A stretch of 64,000 bases of DNA. Origin: Dimorphilus gyrociliatus (Eukaryota; Animalia; Annelida). Each line of letters opens with the position of its first letter. The stretch's first letter is position 1. Positions 7,501-13,047 of the stretch are shown here, piece by piece. The stretch covers positions 3,426,408 through 3,490,407 of the forward strand of contig CAJFCJ010000006.1 in assembly GCA_904063045.1 (NCBI GenBank), in the 5' to 3' direction. The notes under the pieces were generated by a model that worked only from the letters and a program-made list of their open reading frames with translations, was not told the origin of the DNA and searched no databases. The translations under genes and the position numbers were made by a program.

Positions 7501-8275
7501 CATGTGTATACAGAATACAAAAAGTAATTATTTAACATTTTTTCTATTTATCTTATTAATTATAAAACTAGCACCTGCTCCAGAGTTAATAACTCTTTTC
7601 TTTTAAAATTAAGATACAATTGACTAGCAATGTTATCTACTATTTAATATATCTTTAATCTAGCTTAAAAACTACTACTGAGGATGTTCATGATAAGTGG
7701 AACAATTCTTTTTTTTTCATTTCATCCATACACTCACACACACACTCAAAATTCAAAGTTCAATGGTTATAAGGAACATTTCTTGGATTACTGATCGTAT
7801 CTCTTTCAACAAATGCGGCTATGAGTGATAGGTTCAATTGAAAGAGACGTACTCTAACTGATCTGATGTCCGTGTACGGCTTTTTTAGCATTTATCAAAG
7901 TCTCATAATGAAATTACGCTATGGCCTGTAAAAGTAATTTTAAATATTGGACAGCAAAGAAGAGCATACTGATCTGATTTCATTTCGTACAAATGTTAAA
8001 TTCAATTTCAGTAATTCGATAACTCTTTAAACTTGATTTTTGACAACATAGTTAGAGTATATGTCTATAAGAGAATGATGCAATATGCCGCATGGTTTCA
8101 AAAGGTTAGCCATTTATACAGATAGTAGGTGATTTATTGAAAAAATACTCAAACTCAATTAAAGATCATAACATACTTGTTCAATTGGTGCTTTTTCTCC
8201 TTTTAATTTTCTTACTAAATTACCCTGTTCAGTAATTCTTTTCTCAAGATCGGTGTCACGTCTAGCATCCGCCAT
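4505..8275 (-). CDS. HARS1: Histidyl-tRNA synthetase, single gene with alternative first exons
   Basis: WHEP domain split between exon 8275-8177 ([33 protein letters not shown]) and the exon starting at 6310 ([12 protein letters not shown]...FVLKTGK|GTRDY). Class II motifs [34 protein letters not shown] and GGGRYD. Anticodon-binding domain; stop at 4505. Confidence 0.97.
6456..6509 (-). other. Alternative HARS exon encoding a mitochondrial-targeting-like peptide ([18 protein letters not shown])
   Basis: 18 codons, Arg/Ser-rich with no acidic residues. Its phase-0 donor CAG|gtgag is in frame with the acceptor at 6310. Confidence 0.8.
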
Positions 8276-8702
8276 GTTTATCCGGGAAACCTGGCTTACG
8301 CAAGTTTTATTCAATGTCAAAATGAAAGAAATTTTATATTTGCTTTTTATAAAAAAAATATTATTCTACTTATTTTTAAGATTTTGATTTAGAAAATCTT
8401 TTAAAAAATATTTTTTTTTTATGAACTTCCGTTTTCCTAACTAAGGTCAATTTTCAAGGTCATTTTATTTGCGGCAGTTTCTTCGAATAAACTGGGAATC
8501 TGCTTTAACTATTTGGGTATTTAAAGGTTAATGCATATATTTTTAAAGGGCAGATAACATCTTTCGATTAGATGCGAACCTAGCGAATCATTTCACATTA
8601 ATATTTATTATTTCTCACCTATTCCCGAAATATACACCAATTTTCCGTTTAATTAAGTAATATAAAGAAGGACTACGTTTCTATTTCAGCTACTAGAAAA
8701 AT

Positions 8703-10598
8703 ATGGCTACAGGTTTATTGTTCAGAGCAGGCACTTCATTACTTAGACCTTGTGCCAGGAGTCTACCTGCCTCCCATCCTGCAACATTCTTCAACTTGGG
8801 TACAATACAATCAGTGACCATAAATCGTCTTCAACTAGACAAACAGGAAAAATTAACTTTTGTTGACTACAAGAAAAGGACTTTGTCATCATTATCTCTA
8901 AGCTCATTGGTGAAATCATGTCCACCAGCATATCAGCCGTATTTGAATCTAATAAGATTCGATAAACCTATCGGAACTTGGCTGTTATTCCTGCCATGCA
9001 CCTGGGCAATTGCTCTCTCAACACCGGCAGGCTCGCTGCCTAGTTTATACATGCTGGGCGTATTCGGATTGGGTTCTTTTTTGATGAGATCATCTGGTTG
9101 CATAGTAAATGATCTTTGGGATAGGGACTTCGATAGGCAGGTAGAAATGAAAATATTCGGCAGCTGTTTCTTTTTTAAAGTTCTGCATCTAATAGGATCA
9201 TGACCTTAAAATGCCTTGCAGGTAGCTCGCACTAAAAGTAGACCTTTGGCAAGTGGAGATTTGTCGTCTTTCCAAGCTCTTTGCTTTCTAGGCCTAAACC
9301 TCAGCGCTGCACTAGCAATATTACTTTCCTTTAACTTGTATACGTAAGTTTTTAATTTATTTATCTATTCTTTCTTTCCTTTTTATAAAAGATTTTTATT
9401 GTTTACAGAATTAAATTGGGATTTCTAGCAATGGTTCCTGTTATTCTATACCCCTTGGCGAAACGGTTTACCTACTGGCCTCAGGCCGTGTTAGGTAGGA
9501 AATCATTGAGAGAATTATTAAATAATAATCGTCGTATATAGTATCGATATCTTACTCTTTTCGTTTGTTTAAATTTTAGTGTTAGAAAGCAGGAGCGTTT
9601 AAAAAAGTTCATTAGCGTAATATATACAATTTACAGGCTGTACTCTAAACCTGGGCGTACTGATATCTTGGAGCGCCATACACGCTTCACTAACATCTCC
9701 CGCCATTCTCCTTTACACGAGCAGTATTCTGTGGACGATGTTTTACGACTCAGTTTATGCGCATCAGGTCAGATCGATAGAGAACCAAAGATGGCGCCTA
9801 TAATTAAACTTTTTTTAAAAGAAAATAAAAACTAATACTTCAGCTAAAAAATTTCCGTATAAGAAAGTCAAAAATAATCAGACATGAAAATTTCTCTTTA
9901 ATTTCCGCAGGAGTTACTTTCAATTGGGGATGCATGATGGGATGGTCAGCAACCCACGGAACTTGCCTTTGGTCAGCTGTTTTGCCTTTATACTTTGCAG
10001 GATTTTCCTGGACAATTCTTTATGATACAATTTACGCCCATCAGGTTTCATTTCATTTTGCTTTTACAAATTGGCGCCATTTTTGGGAGTAATAGCGGGG
10101 GTGTTTTCACCCACGCAACATCCCCCTTATCATTTCTCTTAAATTAATGACAATTATCAAATGTCTAAAATTTCTATTTCTTTTGTATAAATATAAATAG
10201 GATAAAGAAGATGATGCTTTAATTGGTGTCAAATCTACGGCCTTATTATTCGGGGATAAGTCGAAGATCTGGCTAACAGGGTTTGCAGGGGTGATGATTA
10301 GTGGCTTAGTAGCGACTGGAGTCGTGTGCAATCAGACGTGGCCGTATTTTGCAGGGGTCTGCGCCGTAGGCGCTCATTTGGCATGGCAAGTAAGTGAATA
10401 ATTTAACGGAAGACGAATGAAAAGCCAAGTGCAATTATTCCCTCTCAGATAGGTACTGTTCGGCTAGACGTTAATGATGATTGTGCAGCGAAATTTCGCT
10501 CCAACAAGTCACTCGGCCTTCTGCTATTCGCTTCCATTATGCTAGGCAATTTAATGAAGGAGGAAGAAAAAGCGGACAATTTAGAAGAAACTAAATGA
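8703..10598 (+). CDS. COQ2: 4-hydroxybenzoate polyprenyltransferase (UbiA family) with a pair of mutually exclusive exons
   Basis: Exons 8703-9140, 9222-9343, 9409-9494, [9637-9767 or 9911-10044], 10201-10389 and 10449-10598. Motifs [59 protein letters not shown] and GVKSTAL. The N-terminus resembles a mitochondrial presequence. Confidence 0.97.
9637..9767 (+). other. COQ2 alternative exon A (divergent, rhodoquinone-type candidate), 131 nt
   Basis: tacag|GC...CATCAG|gtcaga; encodes (G)[43 protein letters not shown]. Confidence 0.9.
9785..10086 (+). promoter_or_regulatory. Complementary intronic pair flanking COQ2 exon B (candidate splicing-regulatory RNA duplex)
   Basis: 9785-9798 CCAAAGATGGCGCC pairs with 10073-10086 GGCGCCATTTTTGG: 14 contiguous bp, 13 Watson-Crick plus 1 G.U. 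Confidence 0.7.
9911..10044 (+). other. COQ2 alternative exon B (canonical ubiquinone-type), 134 nt
   Basis: ccgcag|GA...CATCAG|gtttca; encodes (G)[44 protein letters not shown]. Confidence 0.95.
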
Positions 10599-10673
10599 TT
10601 GTATTGTAATAAATGAGAAAATTGTTTCCTGTTTTTCTTACTACGATTCTGTCAAATAATGATTATGAGGATG

Positions 10674-13047
10674 TTACTGTAGTAAGTAGAAACACCAGTA
10701 ACAGACGTTGAAAACGAGGAATAGTGAGGGAAAAGCCAGTCTAGAGTACTTGTCTATTTTGTTCACGTCCTTAACACTTGGCATCTTCTGTCGAAGTTCC
10801 TTGGCTCGTTTCTTCAACGTGTTCAATACCTTCTTCTTCTTTTGTGTATCTTTTTGTCCCCGCCGCCTAAGTTGAGTATGTCCACCTCTCATTGAAAAGG
10901 TGGGTCTAGGATATGCCATTCGTAGAGAAGGAGGCATACGGCTAGTTTCTGCTGACTCGTAATTGAAAGTTTGCCTATTTCTCAGGCTAAGTATAGGCGA
11001 CATTCTAACTTGCTGCAATTCGATCGTTTCGTGCTGCTGCTTTTATTATTCTAATTCAGAAATTTCCGATTATAATATTATTTTAACCTACCTGATCGTA
11101 ATCAGCATTATTTATTTCGTTGTTTTGTAGTTTTTGCTCTTTAAGTCTTTTTGCCTTTCTTTTAGCTCTAGCCCCCCAATAGGTATAATTGACTGCTGCA
11201 TATTCGAGTAGAGCGGCAAACACGAAAACGAAACACATAACTAGGTAAATGTCGATGGCCTTCACATAAGAAATACGAGGCAAGGACGATCTTGTACCCG
11301 TACTGATTGTAGTCATTGTAAGCACAGTTGTTATACCTAACCGGAAAATGGGTTAATTAAATAGTAATAGTATTAATTATCAAGGATGAATGTTACCTAG
11401 AGCTACCCTAGCACTAGTTGCCTCATGATTAATCCAAAAGGAGACCCAAGACAACATAACAATGAGTATAGACGGAAGATAGGTTTGGAAAATGAAATAA
11501 CCAATATTTCTTTGAAGCAGGAAGCTGAGCGACAACCTTTGATAAGTACCTGTCGATCAATTGACCCAATTATCTTAATTATCTTTTGCATAAATAGTTA
11601 GTTCATCAAACGCAAATACTTACCAGTATTAAGTTCTTCAACGGTCGATATTGTACGGTGTTTTACGACTGTAAATTGAGGAATTTCTACTTTATCGACG
11701 CCTTCAATACTTCCTTTATTATGCCAAACCATGACAACATCTTGCATAGGATATCCGTAACTTTCAATTTCGACCGTGCAGTTTTGAACATCCAATGGAT
11801 AGTAATGTAAATCCATCATACAGGCCAGAGTGGTCGTAAACCTCATACCATAAGCTATGGAACCATTCCCGTGAAGCCTCACCATCTTATTTTTTTCAGT
11901 AACGTCGTGCAGAAAAGATTTTTTATCGTTGGCGAAAAACGTGTCGGGAACCCAAATCTTCTCAGAGAAATCCCCAGTTAAAGTCATACAATCTGAATCA
12001 TTATTAGAGAAAGCCAATCTGTCATCCTTCCAGTACTGATTCAAGTAAATCGTTATGGTGTAGTCCTACAAAAAAACGATAGAGAAATTGAGTTAATTGC
12101 CTAAAAGGCCACAACGTCTCTCATGCCACATTGCATTTGCCAGGCTCAGTTGATTATATCACGCGGCGACGTCGGAAAGAAATAAAACTGACAACAATAC
12201 GCGCTTGATTGATGGCTGCATTCCATTTCTGACGAATCGATATTCACAAATGCAATCTTTCTACTCACCATATTCACTTCGGAAATGCTATCGAAACTTG
12301 CCAACGATAGTTCCATGCCAATATGCAAAGGGCTACCTAAACGCGGAATAGAAACAGATTGTTACTTTCCACACGAAATATTGGCTGCATTCGGAAAGCA
12401 AATATTCTAAATCGGTTCGCTCTTATAATCCGTTACGCCGTATTTCATAACTTATTCAATACGTTTAGAAAAAAGCCGATTAAAAATTACTGTAGACGGA
12501 TAATCTATATATAAATTATTAATTATGAAAGCAAAAAGTATAAAAAAAAAGGGAAATTTTGACGAGAAGAGATATTATTGCTAGTCTTCCCTACAATTCC
12601 CTACTTTTTCTACGGCAAAGGGAAAAAAGATATGTAACAAAAACGTATCGATTTTCAATTAATTTTTTGCGGGTTTCTCTTGGCGCGTTCGGTTTATTAT
12701 CCGTAATTTAAATCAATATATCTTCCAACCTCCGAATTGTGGTCTTAAACGAATGTCGTAACCATCTAGTAGATGGGCTATCGTTTTTGAGACATTATCC
12801 AATTGCAGGCCTAGTACTTCGTGCCTGGAAAACAATACGGAAGGAGATTATGACGAGGGTAAGAATCGTTACTTTGAATTTATTACAAGGGATAAGTACA
12901 TTAGAGTCGATAGGCCTATCGACAGTCGATTTCGACCTTTAATTAGTCGATAGACTCGATTATTGGAATAATTTTTTAAACTTACCTGAAAATAATGTTG
13001 AGAAACGTTAAGGAGAAGATGATTATCCGAAACGTTCTTCGAGTCAT
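10674..13047 (-). CDS. Cys-loop GABA-gated chloride channel beta subunit (LCCH3/GAB-1-like)
   Basis: Signal-peptide exon [20 protein letters not shown] (ATG at 13047). Motifs [25 protein letters not shown]|[15 protein letters not shown], Cys loop [16 protein letters not shown]2 [23 protein letters not shown], and M4 [16 protein letters not shown]. Confidence 0.95.

Follow-up and report, generated by a model that had tools for sequence, protein, structure and literature searches.

The DNA analysed here, referred to as the window, is a stretch of 64,000 nucleotides from the annelid Dimorphilus gyrociliatus, which carries on its + strand a seven-exon gene for COQ2, the 4-hydroxybenzoate polyprenyltransferase (Table 1). 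All COQ2 introns have GT..AG ends. Two alternative exons, termed A and B, lie between exon 3 and exon 5, and the reading frame stays open in either isoform. The donors of A and B are located at 9768 and 10045, respectively, and the shared acceptor ends at 10200. Both exons are 3n+2 nucleotides long, and transcripts that include both or leave out both run into a premature stop. The introns around the alternative exons measure 142, 143 and 156 nt, compared to 59-81 nt for the constitutive introns; the A-B intron (143 nt) is indeed longer than the latter, as a first-pass annotation of the sequence had remarked. Direct joining of exon A to exon 5 removes an intron of 433 nt.

Table 1. Exons of COQ2 and conserved elements in the introns around exons A and B, in window coordinates.
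Feature	Position	Strand	Remarks
COQ2 exon 1	8703-9140	+	
COQ2 exon 2	9222-9343	+	
COQ2 exon 3	9409-9494	+	splice sites, frame; donor chooses A or B; RNA joints 9494 to 9637 and 9494 to 9911
Exon A, e-like (putative rhodoquinone-like) alternative exon	9637-9767 (131 nt)	+	translation, motif TLNLG...VYAHQ
Exon B, a-type (ubiquinone-type) alternative exon	9911-10044 (134 nt)	+	translation, motif TFNWG...IYAHQ
Exon 5, common acceptor exon	10201-10389	+	splice sites, frame; RNA joints 10044 to 10201 and 9767 to 10201
COQ2 exon 6	10449-10600	+	
Last 50 nt of the exon 3-A intron	9587-9636	+	47/50 identical in L002; predicted hairpin at about 9589-9616
Exon A donor and leader to the helix, 11 nt	9768-9778	+	11/11 identical in L002
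H0, 5' strand	9779-9783	+	AGAGA here, AACGT in L002; pairs with 10135-10139
H1, 5' arm (arm 1)	9785-9798	+	CCAAAGATGGCGCC; inverted repeat, chance tests; 14/14 in L002
H1, 3' arm (arm 2)	10073-10086	+	GGCGCCATTTTTGG; inverted repeat, chance tests; 14/14 in L002
Island between the 3' strands of H1 and H0, 47 nt	10087-10133	+	43/49 alignment columns identical in L002
H0, 3' strand	10135-10139	+	TCTCT here, ACGTT in L002

The coq-2 a/e switch (exon 6a/6e), which has been described for several animals including annelids (Capitella), selects between ubiquinone and rhodoquinone (RQ) synthesis, and the RQ signature consists of a Phe to Leu and an Ala to Ser exchange, the Ser being reported as invariant (PMC7434440). 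Exons A and B form a tandem pair of homologous 3n+2 exons at this very position. A more distant locus, L001, has one exon at this place and no second; its identity amounts to 66% with exon B (VTFNWG...IYAHQ) and to 42% with exon A (CTLNLG...VYAHQ), and hence exon B is regarded as the pan-eukaryotic, ubiquinone-type form. Exon A contains the Leu of the RQ signature and keeps Ala where Ser is expected, i.e., one of the two signature residues, and the same holds for the related locus L002 described below. Judged by its sequence, exon A would thus be the candidate RQ exon. In Caenorhabditis elegans the coq-2 exon pair is separated by an intron of 678 nt, and its exclusivity is reported to depend on nonsense-mediated decay (PMC4165533). 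The annelid pair is alike in gene, exon position, 3n+2 class (134 nt in C. elegans, 131/134 nt here) and the location of the e-like exon upstream of the a-type exon, but differs in the short intervening intron (143 nt) and in the lack of the signature Ser in exon A.

The introns downstream of exons A and B harbour the top inverted repeat of the region found by a repeat search. The two arms pair over 14 contiguous bp including one G.U pair (G9790.U10081) and form a helix, H1, of -24.0 kcal/mol, exactly where the first-pass annotation had placed it; owing to the G.U pair the complementarity is specific to the + (RNA) strand. The annotation was also right that the pairing encloses the entire exon B (9911-10044) and that the introns carrying the arms are otherwise AT-rich (GC 0.28 and 0.31), while the gaps between donors and arms are 17 and 28 nt instead of 18 and 29 nt, a trivial difference that leaves the layout intact. 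Chance was assessed by the energy of a contiguous helix in 3000 draws for each null; a folding of the whole introns as a duplex had been tried for the same purpose and was discarded, as it yielded a gapped pseudo-duplex rather than the arms. None of 3000 dinucleotide shuffles of the two introns reached -24.0 kcal/mol (best, -20.4 kcal/mol). Among pairs of window segments drawn with matching lengths and spacing, 2/3000 did so, and since both scored exactly -24.0 they most likely represent the H1 locus itself. No further copy of the arm 14-mer was found elsewhere in the 64-kb window, and therefore H1 does not belong to a repeat family.

Upon folding, which had been suggested together with the comparison to shuffled introns, H1 is present in the minimum free energy (MFE) as well as the centroid structure of the A-to-exon-5 intron; the overall stability of this intron is not exceptional (z = -0.9). 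The predicted pair probability of H1 is 0.91-0.99 in all contexts, the longest of which is the entire pre-mRNA, and at least 0.99 in L002. H1 is also the strongest helix common to both species (-24 kcal/mol), followed by a helix of -9.6 kcal/mol. The arms share the palindromic core TGGCGCC, located 24 and 27 nt after the two alternative donors, and because GGCGCC is a palindrome, they are direct as well as inverted repeats over 7 nt. Seven further base pairs of H1, formed by CCAAAGA with TTTTTGG, lie outside of the palindrome.

The direct repeat brings up a different reading, in which the arms are kept as separate binding sites and their complementarity is incidental. The core TGGCGCC might be bound by an RNA-binding splicing factor, or a DNA-binding factor might recognize the GGCGCC palindrome, which may resemble E2F-type sites. 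Such sites would leave the seven additional complementary base pairs unexplained, and the G.U pair fits pairing of the + strand RNA. The comparison between species bears on this reading from both sides.

A search with the protein encoded by exon 1 identified one close cluster of matches, a member of which led to L002, a 12.6-kb genomic locus from another species; the exon 1 proteins are about 74-85% identical. The flanking genes, coding for a histidyl-tRNA synthetase and a GABA-receptor-like protein, are syntenic in L002, and both exon A and exon B are present. An alignment of 792 columns around the alternative exons has a mean column identity of 87%. Identity amounts to 72-73% at the third codon positions of the two exons and to 42-62% in unconstrained intron sequence, and both arms remained without a single change where neutral sites diverged by approximately 28%. 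Exon A differs between the species by 10 synonymous and 8 non-synonymous codon changes in 43 codons; it changes as coding sequence does, and therefore its splicing to exon 5 must matter under some condition.

The same search returned L003 from the close cluster, as well as the more distant loci L001, L004 and L005. L003, L004 and L005 end upstream of the alternative exons and were left out of the helix comparison, and L001 carries an a-type exon only. Loci identified via the neighbouring genes either contain the receptor gene without COQ2 (L007, L008) or are too short (L009). The read-through peptide of exon A and arm 1 yielded no match as a query, the exon 3 open reading frame retrieved solely the L002 species, and a metagenome scan with an exon A peptide pattern revealed no relative. 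A metagenome contig matching a 20-mer of arm 2 has a GC content of 67%, is unrelated and was rejected as a chance match. The species comparison of the helix thus comprises the window and L002 (n=2).

The conserved arms are embedded in larger conserved blocks, namely 9768-9800 and 10045-10133, the latter at about 82-100% identity, and consequently conservation alone does not prove pairing. This spread of conservation past the paired bases and the lack of covariation in H1 are what binding sites would predict, as are the direct repeats. The island that separates arm 2 from the 3' strand of H0 contains a 6-bp G/C hairpin, H2 (10095-10100 with 10110-10116), and a C-run; both species differences within H2 fall into the loop, and H2 is without covariation. 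A search of 9400-10300 against Rfam returned no family, the best E-values (1.2-1.4) being far below the gathering scores.

An RNAalifold analysis of the window/L002 alignment retains H1 and adds a helix of 5 bp, termed H0, just outside of it. Three of the five H0 pairs differ on both sides between the species, and all of them are still Watson-Crick pairs. The A-B intron begins with a stretch of 33 nt (9768-9800) in which the only substitutions are the three in the 5' strand of H0, each of which is matched by a compensating substitution 355 nt downstream. In each species a single exact complement of its own H0 5' strand is found downstream of arm 2, at the homologous place and at an equal offset past a conserved TATCAT anchor. 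Upon shuffling of the downstream-intron columns, such a helix appeared next to arm 1 in 0.07% of the cases (P=7e-4), and among all position pairs of the 792 columns H0 is the only 5-bp helix with at least three compensatory changes (null mean, 0.02), in a test that was framed post hoc, after the helix had been seen, and that comprises two species. The predicted probability of H0 is modest, at 0.4-0.6 in the context of the intron and about 0.02 in longer contexts. An alignment of orthologous introns had been proposed as a check: the arms turned out to be fully conserved, compensatory changes are lacking in the invariant H1, and direct covariation is confined to the adjoining 5-bp H0.

The three compensated changes in H0 are left unexplained if the arms serve as independent protein binding sites, a reading that we consider quite improbable. 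The same changes weigh against the view that the helix reflects either chance or a functionless remnant of the tandem duplication that gave rise to exons A and B. Clusters of mutually exclusive exons (MXEs) do arise by tandem duplication, a process that can generate complementary intron pieces (PMC6071210), and the arms are found at similar offsets past both donors. Yet, none of the 3000 shuffles attains the energy of H1, and the arms are perfectly preserved against a neutral divergence of about 28%. We disfavour chance or a duplication remnant and regard it as very improbable. The stable complementary arms in the introns on either side of exon B, the invariance of H1 and the three compensatory pairs of H0 in two species instead make a selected RNA structure likely.

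Selected intronic pairings are well known from docking-site/selector systems, where competing pairings operate in Dscam1 exon 6, 14-3-3 zeta, Mhc and srp (PMC6071210, PMC4691838). COQ2 resembles these systems in that conserved complementary elements are found in introns beside tandem, homologous exons of equal phase (17 and 28 nt after the donors), and also in the proposed control of exon choice by base pairing across hundreds of nucleotides. A second pairing in competition with H1 was sought among the neighbouring sequences. Between the arms and the exon 3-A intron there is no conserved helix; the strongest candidate pairings range from -4.6 to -9.3 kcal/mol and lie at positions that do not align between the species. 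A pairing of exon A (9673-9679) with arm 1 at -11.1 kcal/mol was dismissed as a competitor, since it is broken in L002, and a pairing of exon A (9652-9658) with 9794-9800 at -9.6 kcal/mol is kept in both species and is uninformative, as its strands are constrained otherwise. One docking site with at least two mutually exclusive selectors was thus not found, and in the absence of a second selector H1 is to be viewed as a looping-out helix rather than as part of a docking/selector system. The analogy to Dscam1 and 14-3-3 zeta drawn in the first-pass annotation holds loosely, i.e., for the conserved complementary elements beside the exons, but not for a competing second pairing. Unlike selectors, which de-repress the adjoining exon, the single pairing in COQ2 encloses an exon and would remove it.

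With H0 and H1 closed, exon B and its two splice sites are contained in a loop of approximately 275 nt. The distance to the helix is then 11 nt for the exon A donor and 61 nt for the exon 5 acceptor, which reduces the 433 nt of the A-to-exon-5 intron to an effective length of approximately 72 nt, within the 59-81 nt of the constitutive introns. Intron stems that shorten the effective distance between donor and branch point have been described for introns of yeast and Drosophila. The COQ2 helix would be similar to these stems in bringing the donor and the branch/acceptor region of a long intron to the spacing of a short one, but differs in that its loop holds a complete competing exon, such that the stem would affect an alternative choice and not only efficiency. 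On balance, the single reading that explains the data best is a helix that loops out exon B and thereby allows the rhodoquinone-like isoform to be made. According to this model, the arms and H0 would form a conserved intronic helix (H0+H1, approximately 19 bp) in the COQ2 pre-mRNA, the A-to-exon-5 intron would then behave as an ordinary intron of 59-81 nt, and exon A would be joined to exon 5 under skipping of exon B. If the helix formed late, the exon B donor would be spliced to exon 5, and transcripts already committed to A would end as intron-retaining, prematurely terminated RNA. The helix would have to form in vivo, the effective intron length of approximately 72 nt is the main mechanistic argument that it may promote splicing of A to exon 5, and by this route it might influence the choice of quinone and the ubiquinone/rhodoquinone (UQ/RQ) ratio.

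RNA contigs on 8650-10700 from four public runs, one with the window sequence (X5) and three from relatives (X6, X8, X15), put this model into perspective. Spliced joints are present in all four runs. The joints of exon 3 to A (word depth 210 in X5, 88 in X8 and 14 in X15), of exon 3 to B (245, 49 and 3) and of B to exon 5 (624, 181 and 12) each occur in three runs, and A and B are chosen by the exon 3 donor to about the same extent. The joint of A to exon 5 is found in X15 only (depth 5.7; none in X5 and X8), where it has GT..AG ends at the exact exon boundaries. In X5 and X8 a single contig extends without interruption from exon A across the entire A-B intron and into exon B, its depth being 362 and 70, respectively. 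The exon 3-A intron is also retained in X5 (depth 165). The B-exon 5 intron has a depth of 0 in both of these runs, and next to no RNA covers the constitutive introns. Among 40 of the 132 base differences listed for X6, X8 and X15, none falls within the arms of H1.

The depths in X5 add up along the gene: exon A is entered at 210+165=375 and left through the retained intron at 362, and exon B is entered at 362+245=607 and left at 624 by the joint to exon 5. Approximately 40% of the X5 transcripts are estimated to be the productive B form, most exon A transcripts to be of the type exon 3-A-[intron]-B-exon 5 with a stop 11 codons into the intron, and the productive A form to account for at most a few per cent, all of these proportions being estimates, as contig depths are flat averages from which rare branches have been dropped. 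Since contigs drop rare variants, the missing A-to-exon-5 joint is weak evidence. Taken together with the retained A-B intron in X5 and X8, it implies that the helix is at most permissive or conditional, and the depth of 0 for the B-exon 5 intron in these runs indicates that the helix does not stop the use of the exon B donor there.

These RNA data leave room for a real, selected structure with a job other than promoting the splice from A to exon 5, as conservation and covariation support a structure and no particular function. The helix might block the joining of the A donor to the B acceptor and thereby account for exclusivity, or it might control when the flanking introns are removed. Neither an A-to-B joint nor a joint skipping both exons was found among the contig joints of the runs, the former even though the A-B intron, at 143 nt, has sufficient length for splicing. 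Retention at high depth is seen for the A-B and exon 3-A introns, and the other four are essentially absent. The structure might further set the level of unproductive, intron-retaining RNA, or promote back-splicing of exon B into a small circular RNA. Inverted repeats that flank an exon, as H1 does, are the known layout for circular RNAs. A backward joint of 10044 to 9911 is absent among the contig joints, a weak counterargument given that linear contigs would rarely show one. Upon joining of B to exon 5, moreover, arm 2 is gone, yet the A-B intron stays unspliced, and hence its retention does not need the helix. Only the looping-out model explains why the effective length of approximately 72 nt matches the normal intron size, and we deem a different job for the structure rather unlikely.

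Within the looping-out model, the choice of quinone might be set at a second, structure-gated splicing step and not at the choice of the exon, a speculation to which we assign a low probability. About half of the transcripts would then take A at the exon 3 donor, and these would be productive only if H0/H1 closed before the exon B donor is used; otherwise, they would constitute dead-end, intron-retaining RNA. The outcome could represent a conditional switch that is set by the elongation rate, a helicase or a protein binding to the arms, perhaps under low oxygen, and the helix would turn a large pool of wasted RNA into an alternative enzyme. Should this hold true, similar helices might occur in coq-2 of parasitic helminths.

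A related case is the human ATE1 gene, the exons 7a/7b of which are governed by the competing stems R1-R3/R3-R4 and the looping pairing R2-R5, where the isoform ratio is determined by a single long-range pairing that relies on co-transcriptional folding (PMC7797038). ATE1 and COQ2 have in common a cluster of two MXEs with intronic base pairings. The ATE1 system involves five elements over up to 30 kb, with competition and mutational proof, in contrast to COQ2, where one compact three-way structure spanning 360 nt is predicted. For coq-2 itself, no cis-acting RNA structure is described in PMC7434440 or PMC4165533. A literature search combining coq-2 with docking/selector or RNA structure terms did not retrieve an earlier description either, in agreement with the first-pass annotation, which knew of none.

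The proposed looping-out helix represents a known kind of mechanism, found here at a switch of metabolic interest, since worms and molluscs have been shown to change between ubiquinone and rhodoquinone synthesis by alternative splicing of COQ2. A conserved helix around the ubiquinone-type exon provides a concrete and testable hypothesis for the cis control of this switch. Rhodoquinone synthesis is a drug target in parasitic helminths, and the finding indicates which kind of element might be sought in their coq-2 introns.

In RNA contigs of run X5, which are identical to the window, the two introns flanking exon A, the rhodoquinone-like alternative exon of COQ2, are retained: the exon 3-A intron (9495-9636) reaches a depth of 165 and the A-B intron (9768-9910) a depth of 362, versus approximately 620 for the exons. 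The remaining four COQ2 introns are present at near-zero levels in the same contigs, and therefore, most exon-A RNA is the intron-retaining form. The A-B intron harbours a stop codon 11 codons past exon A. Contigs of run X8, which stems from a relative, reproduce this retention pattern.

The exon 3-A intron ends in a 50-nt stretch (9587-9636) that is 94% identical between the window and L002, the aligned COQ2 locus of a related species, a value above that of the exons. RNAalifold, applied to the two species, predicts a local hairpin at approximately 9589-9616, where changes are one-sided only. This segment is a candidate regulator and may govern the choice between exon 3-to-A and exon 3-to-B splicing. 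A second conserved element adjoins arm 2, the downstream strand of the intronic helix that encloses the ubiquinone-type exon B (see table). Both interspecies differences within its hairpin occupy loop positions, and comparison of the island with Rfam matched no family.

Two weaker helices involving exon A are common to both species. In one, positions 9647-9654 and the donor site of exon B at 10041-10048 could form 8 bp (-8.4 kcal/mol); in the other, positions 9652-9658 could form 7 bp (-9.6 kcal/mol) with 9794-9800, the 3'-terminal half of arm 1, which is the upstream strand of the enclosing helix. Their conservation is uninformative, because other constraints act on both strands.

Features adjoining arm 2 or flanking COQ2
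Feature	Window positions	Strand	Remark
Conserved G-run/C-run island with 6-bp G/C hairpin	10087-10133		directly 3' of arm 2
Histidyl-tRNA synthetase gene (WHEP domain exon)	8200-8270	-	flanks COQ2
GABA-receptor-like Cys-loop channel gene	10674-12044	-	flanks COQ2, convergent

Two odd joints appear within 9767-9911 among the RNA contigs of run X15, likewise from a relative: 9767 to 9847, which carries two extra letters, and 9803 to 9911, which has TT..AG ends. Either could stem from artefactual alignment, from more than one organism being mixed together or from a deletion in a related genome; the former joint would delete arm 1.

The two-residue Leu/Ser rhodoquinone signature has been termed invariant (PMC7434440). 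In exon A (window 9637-9767; L002 6969-7099) the Leu is present and the Ser is absent, its position being occupied by Ala in both species.

The COQ2 gene neighbourhood is syntenic in L002, and the Cys-loop channel exons encode nearly identical protein in the two species. Several coral, marine and invertebrate metatranscriptome runs contain 5-9% of the 31-mers sampled from COQ2 (window 8700-10600), and these sequence matches suggest that relatives of the worm occur in such samples.
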